From the NCBI RefSeq assembly GCF_000400465.1, contig NW_008806294.1, positions 112,958-144,957 on the forward strand: 32,000 nucleotides of DNA. Reading direction: 5' to 3'. A model generated the notes under the pieces. It was given only the letters and a program-made list of their open reading frames with translations. It searched no databases and had not been told where the DNA came from. The stretch comes from Wallemia ichthyophaga EXF-994 (taxonomy: Eukaryota > Fungi > Basidiomycota). Position 1 is the first letter of the stretch; each line of letters starts with the position of its first letter. A program made the position numbers and the translations under genes. Below, one piece after another: positions 17,131-29,637 of the stretch.

Positions 17131-17954
17131 ATGGATGCGCCTGCACCTGCAGCTCGCAGGTCGGCTTCAGGACGTGCACAGATGTTAAATGGCCTACGCA
17201 AACCTTCACAGCTTGAGATTGAGCAGCATGACTTTATCGTGAGTTGTTATACGTCTTGAGCATATACAACGGCTAATCACGCGTTTTATTTTACCAGCTA
17301 CAACAACAACAAGCCACCATCGATCAGCTTGCAAGTCTGCAGGCTCAGACCCAGCAGATATTCGCTCAAATGGATTTGAATGGTGCACACGCGCCCAACA
17401 ACCGCGAAGCAATCTCAAATAATATGCAGAACATGACAAGAACACGCAGATTATCTAGTAATCCTCCTCCAACCAGCGCTAATCATCGCTCCAATACTCC
17501 CTTCAAAGGCCGTAGACCGGCAAGCTTAAACCTGTCAGCACTCAACACCGCAGCACCAATTCATGAGGAGCTACATAATGCTCCACTACCACACACTGCG
17601 ATTCACAATTCCAACCAACCTCATCGCAACAACAACGCCAGCAAGAGAAAAACTTACTCTAACTTGGGCCACCTCCCTCCAGTTCCGCAGTCTGCACCTG
17701 CTAACGCTCCAAATGGAAGACATTCCTCCTTCCGTGTCCCTTCAGCACTCAATTCTGCAAACAACGCTCCTCAAGGTTGCGTGAGACAACCACGTGGTCC
17801 ACCTTCAGAAAACCTCGAGGCTGTTAACTTTAGCTCCAGACAACGCAAATTGGCAAGTAGACGTTTGTCTGGTTTGGCTGGCATAGCTGGCGCTAGACGT
17901 AGAGTCAGTGTGGCTCCTACTGGTGACCCAATCGATGCATCAAATGGCGATTAA
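17131..17954 (+). CDS. Low-complexity Asn/Pro/Gln-rich protein with C-terminal RQPRGPP motif (254 aa)
   Basis: Exons 17131-17238 and 17298-17954. VRQPRGPP...NFSSRQRK resembles SUZ-C-type RQPRGP motifs. Confidence 0.7.
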
Positions 17955-18391
17955 ACTGTGTTTATTTTAACACTCCCCTCGAACACCCCAAGCATTATTT
18001 ACGTTCTACGTACATTCACAATCTCTTTGTATTATAGTGATATCAGCAATCCATTCAAATGTTTTCTTGTGACGCGCCAGTTTGGGAACGAATGCTACAA
18101 ATGATACGAATACTACGAATGCTATAAATACGACGCAGGGATAGAAGGAGCATACTGCGGAATGAGCCTTGGCAATACTATCCGCGACGTACGTATGTGC
18201 CCCTTCAATCAGTGCATGGTGTCACTCGAGGTAGAAGCTAAATCACCTTGATTATACGCAACACAAGATTTGGCGAACGTCCTAATACATTTCGTAGTAC
18301 AGAATCGAACCTATCTATTACACTCTAGAATAGCACAAAAAAATGTCTTCAGCAGTAGCAAAGGTTGAGGAAAATTATGATTAAAATTCTT

Positions 18392-18398
18392 AAAAAAA
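18392..18398 (-). terminator. RNA polymerase III terminator (T7)
   Basis: TTTTTTT on the - strand, 6 nt after G37 of the permuted tRNA 5' half. Confidence 0.7.
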
Positions 18399-18404
18399 TC
18401 ATAG

Positions 18405-18480
18405 CCGTAGTCGAATACTCTACCATTGAGCCAGCCGGCCGTGGTGACCGACGCAGGGCTCGAACCTGCAACCTTTCGAT
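18405..18480 (-). tRNA. Circularly permuted tRNA-Arg(ACG): 3' half (18480-18445), CCAC linker, 5' half (18440-18405)
   Basis: 3' half ATCGAAAGGTTGCAGGTTCGAGCCCTGCGTCGGTCA precedes 5' half GGCCGGCTGGCTCAATGGTAGAGTATTCGACTACGG. Rejoined, they form a complete 72-nt cloverleaf: acceptor GGCCGGC/GTCGGTC, D stem GCTC/GAGT, anticodon stem TTCGA/TCGAA, loop CTACGGA, T stem GCAGG/CCTGC. Confidence 0.88.
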
Positions 18481-18491
18481 ATCAGCTACTC

Positions 18492-18502
18492 CCATTGAGT
18501 TA
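18492..18502 (-). promoter_or_regulatory. A-box-like element upstream of the permuted tRNA
   Basis: TAACTCAATGG has one mismatch to TRGCNNARYGG and lies 25 nt before the B box GGTTCGAGCC. Confidence 0.55.
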
Positions 18503-18670
18503 TTTTGAACTGAAAGCTTTACTTAAATCAACACAATATAATAAAAGAACAAACTTGCACAAAGAAATGCTCAATTAGTGCAAAACTAATACCTTCAGTT
18601 ATGTGGGAACATAGACACTAGAAAATATCTACGTGCTGAAGTAGAGTTTTTAGATGCACAAAATCAAAGT

Positions 18671-29539: not shown

Positions 29540-29637
29540 AGCCCCACGCGGGGCTCGAACCCGCAGCCTTGTGATTAAAAGTCACCCGCAGCCTTGTGAT
29601 TAAGAGTCACACGCTCTACCGATTGAGCTAGCGAGGC
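29540..29637 (-). tRNA. tRNA-Lys gene with a duplicated anticodon arm (CTT, then TTT)
   Basis: GCCTCGCTAGCTCAATCGGTAGAGCGT[GTGACTCTTAATCACAAGGCTGCGG][GTGACTTTTAATCACAAGGCTGCGG]GTTCGAGCCCCGCGTGGGGCT. Length is 98 nt = 73 + 25. Followed by T5. Confidence 0.85.
29561..29610. repeat. 25-bp tandem duplication inside tRNA-Lys (24/25 identical)
   Basis: Copies at 29561-29585 and 29586-29610 differ only at the wobble base (29579 vs 29604). Confidence 0.95.

Follow-up and report, generated by a model that had tools for sequence, protein, structure and literature searches.

The leader of a permuted tRNA-Arg(ACG) gene in the fungus Wallemia: a D-arm-like sequence read as promoter or as RNA

Introduction

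Permuted tRNA genes, in which the 3' half lies ahead of the 5' half, have so far been known from a few algae, one nucleomorph and one archaeon; most eukaryotes lack them (2014 review, PMC3978253), and no report of such genes in fungi was found in the literature searched. Transcription of the earlier examples has been explained by TATA-driven, TFIIIC-independent initiation. For the algal genes, the standard model of origin is a tandem duplication followed by loss of the outer halves (PMC3978253). A stretch of 32,000 nucleotides (the window) from the type strain EXF-994 of the salt-loving Wallemia ichthyophaga, scaffold KE007244.1, carries the protein genes ZPR1, 5-aminolevulinate synthase and COX15 and, on its minus strand, a permuted tRNA-Arg(ACG) gene whose leader resembles the D arm of the gene itself. 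Identity between the locus and this scaffold is 100%, as it is between the neighbouring protein and one from W. ichthyophaga. The question is what this sequence does and where it came from: whether it acts as DNA, supplying an A box upstream of the B box, or as RNA, and whether it is the footprint of a lost half-gene.

A conserved permuted tRNA-Arg(ACG) gene

Read along the minus strand from 18546 to 18392, the locus comprises TTTTATTATATT, an 18-nt spacer, CTTTCAG TTCAAAA, TA ACTC AATGG GAGT and AGCTGAT, followed on the same strand by the 3' half, CCAC, the 5' half, CTATGA and TTTTTTT (Table 1). With the 3' half ahead of the 5' half on one strand and a short linker between them, the gene is a type II permutation (junction 37/38). 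In native order it escapes detection, as ARAGORN calls nothing at the locus, nor any tRNA across the window, and the Rfam tRNA model does not find it either; the sole Rfam alignment there is to the permuted tRNA-like module of YrlA (35 bits). Once the halves are swapped back, ARAGORN calls a normal 75-nt tRNA-Arg(ACG), which confirms the permuted gene that a preliminary description had proposed at this place. The alternative of a gene in ordinary order, with a long intron and its 3' exon downstream, was rejected, since the T7 run lies 6 nt past G37 and no 3' half follows downstream. Because ARAGORN and the Rfam tRNA model miss permuted genes, and tRNAs were annotated with tRNAscan-SE 1.23 in the Wallemia genome paper, a decoder for CGU, CGC and CGA may seem to be missing from Wallemia genomes.

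Table 1. Features of the permuted tRNA-Arg(ACG) locus, in order of transcription (positions are those of the window)
Feature	Positions	Strand	Remarks
TATA-like TTTTATTATATT	18535..18546	-	~24-35 nt upstream of conserved CAG (18512-18510)
Leader start CTTTCAG TTCAAAA, contains TTCA(A/G)A	18503..18516	-	candidate transcription start region
A-box-like 11-mer TAACTCAATGG	18492..18502	-	invariant in 10 strains; position 3 is T in the paralogue
Pseudo-D-arm hairpin: ACTC 18500-18497, loop AATGG 18496-18492, GAGT 18491-18488	18488..18500	-	in all predicted folds
Leader 3' segment AGCTGAT	18481..18487	-	pairs with C35-G36-G37 and the first two trailer bases (constrained and free folds)
3' half of tRNA-Arg(ACG), positions 38-73	18445..18480	-	B box GGTTCGAGCC at 18466-18457
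Linker CCAC, 4 nt, between A73 and G1	18441..18444	-	
5' half of tRNA-Arg(ACG), positions 1-37	18405..18440	-	true A box TGGCTCAATGG and anticodon ACG
Trailer CTATGA and T7 run (Pol III terminator)	18392..18404	-	

The permuted gene is found at two loci in W. ichthyophaga, two in W. hederae and one in W. mellicola. At the window locus the copy is shared by nine further strains of W. ichthyophaga and by W. hederae, and a fourth relative (Logan contig, L023) has a truncated syntenic copy there, which was left out of the leader comparison since the contig stops within the 5' half. The second locus, adjoining YHM2 and a hydrophobin gene, occurs in W. ichthyophaga, W. hederae and W. mellicola. A scan of metagenomes for further copies returned one useful locus, that of W. 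mellicola; another match, a tRNA followed by a partial D-arm-like stretch, was read as bacterial and irrelevant.

All 21 cloverleaf pairs hold in each of the six distinct sequences (100% of 126 pair cells standard). Two double changes separate W. hederae from the rest, C3:G70 to A3:T70 and T28:A42 to C28:G42, each of them in a stem that forms solely between the two halves. Downstream of the trailer, all copies have a run of at least 4-6 T. Because the compensatory changes fall in stems that join both halves, the permuted gene is, to judge from its sequence, functional; since the cloverleaf and the T-run are conserved across the copies of different species, the permutation is evidently older than the radiation of the genus.

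Some neighbouring observations concern the history of these loci. The second copy of EXF-994 (L028, 6133-6209 (-), scaffold KE007226.1) carries in its T loop an extra T (GGTTTCGAGCC) that is missing from this copy in two other strains; it reflects either a mistake in assembly or a mutation that inactivates the copy, and in the latter case the window copy could be the sole intact one in EXF-994. At the spot syntenic to the window gene, defined as that after the orthologue of the gene at 17370-17954, W. mellicola has an ordinary tRNA-Lys(TTT) (L022, 4758-4832 (-)) and a distant relative from metagenomes an ordinary tRNA-Ile(AAT) (L001, 15437-15510 (-)); the site seems to be a place of tRNA gene turnover.

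Sequence and variation of the leader

The leader, AATAACTCAATGGGAGTAGCTGAT (18504-18481, minus strand), reads TAACTCAATGG-GAGT at 18502-18488 and aligns with the region of the true D arm (18431-18415) as CTCAATGG--GAGTA, with 13/13 identities and one 2-nt gap (p ~0.004). In local alignment, scores as good were reached by 19-22 of 5000 shuffled leaders and by 9 of 2522 other 50-nt segments of the window. Without gaps, TAACTCAATGG is identical to the true A box at 9/11 positions. Between the end of the 11-mer (18492) and the start of the B box (18466) there are 25 nt, and an AT-rich TTATTATATT lies at 18544-18535, 33-42 nt upstream of the 11-mer. The preliminary description had seen a decayed D arm here, with an ACTC-AATGG-GAGT hairpin, an A-box-like element 25 nt before the B box and an AT-rich element roughly 30-40 nt further upstream. 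The coordinates agree with all of this, the hairpin (18500-18488) is present in every predicted fold, and the likeness to the D arm is stronger than had been claimed.

One of the 12 positions of the TATA-like element is variable among ten strains. W. mellicola and locus 2 of W. hederae have such an element too; no clear equivalent was found upstream of W. ichthyophaga locus 2 and W. hederae locus 1. In the window's tRNA-Lys gene, TTATAATTT occupies -36..-28. That gene (29540-29637 (-)), of ordinary order, scores 56 bits with Rfam and is missed by ARAGORN; at 29559-29614 it contains an internal tandem duplication of 25 nt, giving two consecutive anticodon arms, CUU then UUU. Possible readings are a pseudogene, an unusual intron within the gene, or two genes in one.

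A comparison of ten W. ichthyophaga strains shows variation at 0/72 positions in the mature halves, 3/4 in the linker, 8/17 in trailer and terminator, 6/18 from -54 to -37 and 6/34 from -100 to -67. In the leader (-36 to -1) just one position of 36 varies, which argues that the whole of it from CTTTCAG on is constrained, beyond the 11-mer alone. The flanks at 18392-18404 and 18517-18534 (-) are polymorphic at 33-47% of positions, as compared with ~7% in DNA further off (L011-L020).

The second W. ichthyophaga copy has its leader in common with the window copy from about -36, and within the hairpin the paralogues differ at two positions only, ACTC/GAGT versus TCTC/GAGA, an A:T to T:A swap. Both positions are partners of one pair, and complementarity is kept; by our own estimate the chance of such a compensating pair is ~0.006, for a covariation that is a single event. 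Because the sole differences between the paralogous hairpins compensate each other, the comparison points to selection at the RNA level. The changed base corresponds to position 3 of the A-box consensus, where G would be expected.

Leader-trailer pairing and intron-like features

A MAFFT alignment of five leaders contains two invariant features only, the motif TTCA(A/G)A and a G at -3 (18483 in the window), ahead of the 3' splice site. In W. ichthyophaga and W. hederae the motif is 29-30 nt away from the splice site, in W. mellicola 47 nt. Apart from these two features, the W. ichthyophaga leader does not align with those of the other two species. Despite their differing sequences, the W. hederae copies and W. 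mellicola form strong leader-trailer duplexes in comparison with shuffled trailers (z -3.1 for W. hederae copy 1, -3.6 for copy 2 and -4.9 for W. mellicola). Pairing in W. hederae begins at the TTCA(A/G)A motif, and the D-arm-like bases of W. mellicola lie inside an 11-bp leader-trailer duplex. In W. ichthyophaga, which has a short trailer, the leader-trailer helix comprises 5 bp and is not significant alone (z -1.8 and -0.8); the hairpin is predicted to stack directly on this helix, formed by AGCUG with C35-G36-G37 and two trailer bases, and the predicted fold places the 5' splice site within the helix, not in a bulge.

No strict 3-4-3 bulge-helix-bulge was found at the junction in the predicted folds of the Wallemia copies. 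A candidate for a strict motif, C32-C35 with leader GTAG, pairs at locus 1 and is broken at locus 2 (GAAG), for which reason the AGCUG:C35-G37 helix is preferred. Cleavage at the 3' site of eukaryotic tRNA introns needs an anticodon-intron pair, between a purine at -3 and a pyrimidine at 32. Such an arrangement is seen in an ordinary W. hederae tRNA-Val(AAC) gene with a 31-nt canonical intron (L026, 8339-8442 (+)), ~2 kb from the second permuted copy, which has a purine at -3 opposite pyrimidine 32, and the permuted leaders have G at -3 together with C32. The partner of G(-3) may be either C32 or C35.

The leader as a possible promoter element

The decayed D arm could instead be a working A box that restores the order of A box then B box, with TFIIIC placing TFIIIB on the AT-rich element; we consider this unlikely. 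Its attraction lies in the 11-mer itself, which matches the true A box at 9/11 positions, keeps T1, A7 and G11 of the minimal consensus and is invariant in ten strains between hypervariable flanks. Relative to the B box, the 11-mer is on the promoter side, and the TATA-like element lies 33-42 nt further upstream, so that the succession of TATA-like element, ~25 nt, CAG, 9 nt, 11-mer, 25 nt and B box resembles a compressed type-2 promoter. In W. mellicola, TGGTTCAATTG likewise matches at 9/11 and has the G at position 3. TauA reads mainly DNA shape. In yeast, the A box positions tauA and TFIIIB (PMC11724288), and its consensus is TRGCNNAGTGG, with the minimal form TNGNNNANNNG (PMC11724288); by our count against this consensus, TAACTCAATGG agrees at 7/9 specified positions and at 3/4 of the minimal ones, G3 being absent.

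The spacing, however, speaks against an A box, as natural distances between the A and B boxes of yeast tRNA genes are 31-93 bp, most commonly 32 (PMC11724288), whereas the distance is 25 nt in the window copy and 22 or 30 nt in W. mellicola. Position 3, a G in the consensus, is A in the window copy and T in its paralogue, and this A/T difference is matched 13 nt away, a match for which a DNA-binding motif has no need. Moreover, the 11-mer is not recognisable in either W. hederae copy, the corresponding W. mellicola bases are paired with the trailer, and in assays of yeast tRNA-His a pseudo-A box failed to substitute for the real one (PMC11724288). By-eye alignment had given A-box-like 11-mers for W. 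hederae (TAGCACAGCAG, TAATCCAGCGG); these are unsupported by MAFFT, and their 6-7/11 matches to the true A box are not significant. The orthologue comparison suggested in the preliminary description thus gives a divided answer, with invariance of the 11-mer within the species and a 9/11 match, at another distance, in W. mellicola on one side and its disappearance in W. hederae on the other. The claim that the D arm was kept as the promoter A box is, given the spacing, the missing G3, W. hederae and the compensatory swap, mostly left without support, and as a reading of these sequences it appears weaker than one at the RNA level.

The two roles are not exclusive, and the D-arm bases could serve both as a DNA and as an RNA element. 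It might be, at similarly low odds, that the relic's upstream A-box-like site lets the permuted gene survive in a fungus that presumably uses TFIIIC, the same bases being promoter and split-intron hairpin; if true, such a dual role would explain the rise and persistence of permuted tRNA genes outside TFIIIC-poor algae.

Origin of the D-arm-like sequence

The preliminary description derived the gene from a tandem duplication with loss of the outer halves. In favour of this, D-arm-like leader sequence recurs in two of the three species, upstream and in the right orientation: besides W. ichthyophaga (p ~0.004), the W. mellicola leader contains the D-arm-like TCAATGGT (p ~0.014), which overlaps TGGTTCAATTG, the W. 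mellicola 11-mer with 9/11 identities to the true A box. On the other side, neither W. hederae leader has a significant likeness to the 5' half, so that a relic was either erased there or never existed; no relic of an outer 3' half was found past the trailer, where comparison of trailer and 3' half was not significant in any copy; and the arrangement is not simply colinear, as 6 nt separate the leader relic from the 3' half, whereas positions 27-37 need 11. On this sequence evidence, it is plausible that the D-arm-like piece is the footprint of a head-to-tail duplication; the interpretation in the preliminary description, footprint and promoter taken together, is partly supported.

Other candidates for relics were set aside. 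The leader has GTTCA..TAACTCA in common, by eye, with the syntenic tRNA-Ile(AAT) of the distant relative (L001), of whose 5' half it could have been a decayed copy, but the local alignment is not significant (724/5000 shuffles). A B-box-like GGTTCGATTC lies at 18302-18311 (-), 94 nt downstream of the permuted gene. As an outer 3' half or a relic of a syntenic tRNA-Ile it was rejected, having no T-stem and no significant alignment with tRNA-Ile, tRNA-Lys or tRNA-Arg, and no such B-box-like sequence was found downstream of the other permuted copies. In EXF-994 the linker reads CCAC, as it does in the two copies of W. hederae; other W. ichthyophaga sequences have TTAC or TTGC at locus 1 and CTAC or CTGC at locus 2, and in W. 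mellicola the linker consists of one A. Eukaryotic tRNA genes seldom encode CCA, the ordinary ones examined have none right after the discriminator base, and the linker CCA may be a hint of an RNA-mediated origin, in which a dimer arose via an RNA copy. It is not required, since it is mutated in other strains and absent in W. mellicola.

Might the likeness be fortuitous, with the leader shaped by nothing but its folding into a hairpin or a duplex with the trailer? Hairpins that are short and have GG in the loop evolve easily, the W. hederae leaders have no D-arm likeness, a 3'-half relic is absent, and the leaders of the species cannot be aligned save for TTCA.A and G at -3. Chance would nevertheless have had to produce, in two lineages, matches to the same part of the 5' half (p ~0.004 and ~0.014), correctly oriented and upstream of the 3' half, and our own Fisher combination over four independent leaders gives ~0.002; we regard this account as somewhat less likely still than the promoter one. 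Age raises a different difficulty. As the permutation is old and the neighbouring intergenic DNA saturated, a neutral relic should have vanished, and its survival in W. ichthyophaga would most readily follow from reuse as a hairpin or from later copying of the true D arm. Such copying, by gene conversion or slippage from the D arm ~70 nt downstream, would account for a near perfect match in W. ichthyophaga, although the permutation predates the split of the three species and intergenic DNA is unalignable. Within a given species the two loci show concerted evolution, which suggests that conversion is active at them; the W. mellicola leader has a local direct repeat, TTCAATGG TTCAATTG; and the duplication in the tRNA-Lys gene of the window indicates that internal tandem duplication of tRNA genes occurs in this genome. 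Still, there is no direct evidence of such an event, and the leader piece has a 2-nt deletion and a stem-closing pair of its own, unlike the true D arm, which makes secondary copying the least probable of these histories.

A model of the leader as part of an opened intron

On the comparative evidence, the leader would be kept because its RNA folds and takes part in processing, and not as an A box of the promoter. In the explanation favoured here, to which we assign a probability of about 0.55, 18481-18516 (-) is the transcribed 5' leader, leader and trailer together are an opened canonical 37/38 intron, and the relic has been reused as an RNA hairpin. AGCTGAT would pair with C35-G37 and the first trailer bases, with the G at -3 preceding the 3' splice site in a small loop, and the upstream part of the leader would form a helix that extends the anticodon stem, namely the ACTC/GAGT hairpin in W. 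ichthyophaga and the long leader-trailer duplex in W. hederae and W. mellicola. By analogy with the known pathway of algal permuted genes, the tRNA splicing endonuclease would cut the precursor and ligation would follow; the ends would then be processed at the 1-4 nt linker and CCA added, yielding the mature tRNA. Most likely, the D-arm-like sequence would descend from the outer 5' half of a head-to-tail dimer and have been taken into use as the hairpin. Transcription probably relies on the B box and on upstream sequence, that is the TATA-like element where present and the TTCA(A/G)A region, which we infer to be the candidate start (18503..18516); a putative contribution of the relic as an A-box-like site would be secondary.

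The most interesting result is a conserved family of permuted tRNA-Arg(ACG) genes in a fungus, with an opened canonical intron as probable leader and trailer. A conserved and evidently functional gene of this kind in a culturable basidiomycete genus makes its transcription and origin testable. The leader is the best available clue to that origin, through its D-arm relic and, in some copies, the CCA at the junction, and is a concrete candidate for an RNA processing or promoter element.

Comparison with known systems

The closest parallels are the permuted tRNA genes of Cyanidioschyzon merolae, of prasinophyte green algae and of the Bigelowiella natans nucleomorph (Soma et al. 2007; Maruyama et al. 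2010; PMC3978253). The Wallemia genes have in common with them the 3' half first, both halves on one strand, a junction at 37/38 (type II), an acceptor stem closed by a short linker, predicted pairing between leader and trailer, a T-stretch after the 5' half and, sometimes, an AT-rich or TATA-like element upstream. They differ in belonging to a basidiomycete, in having a linker of 1-4 nt as against 7-74 nt in C. merolae, and in a junction that resembles a eukaryotic anticodon-paired intron with a purine at -3 and not a strict bulge-helix-bulge. The D-arm-like hairpin in the leader also sets Wallemia apart from the algal genes, which are thought to be TFIIIC-independent, while Wallemia presumably uses TFIIIC. 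In Ostreococcus, as cited in the review (PMC3978253), a leftover tRNA half beside a permuted gene has been interpreted as an intermediate, or a footprint, in the duplication model; there the extra half is recognisable and lies downstream, whereas the Wallemia piece consists of 13-15 nt of a D arm, lies upstream and is apparently selected as an RNA hairpin.

Compared with a type-2 Pol III promoter, the leader is similar in that a TATA-like element, an 11-mer resembling TRGCNNAGTGG and a perfect B box follow one another in this order, and dissimilar in its 25-nt spacing, the lack of G3, the absence of conservation in W. hederae and the apparent selection at the RNA level. The permuted tRNAs of Thermofilum pendens (Chan et al. 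2011, PMC3218864) likewise have a permuted order, and CCA ends the 3' half in some Wallemia copies as it does there; in Wallemia, however, this CCA is not conserved (TTA, CTA, TTG or none), and promoter and splicing systems differ. Canonical 37/38 introns, such as that of the W. hederae tRNA-Val, are matched by the anticodon-intron pairing, the purine at -3 opposite pyrimidine 32 and the same junction. Unlike these, the Wallemia intron is open, with the leader as its 3' part and the trailer as its 5' part, and its ligation would give a circle that still needs a cut at the acceptor end.
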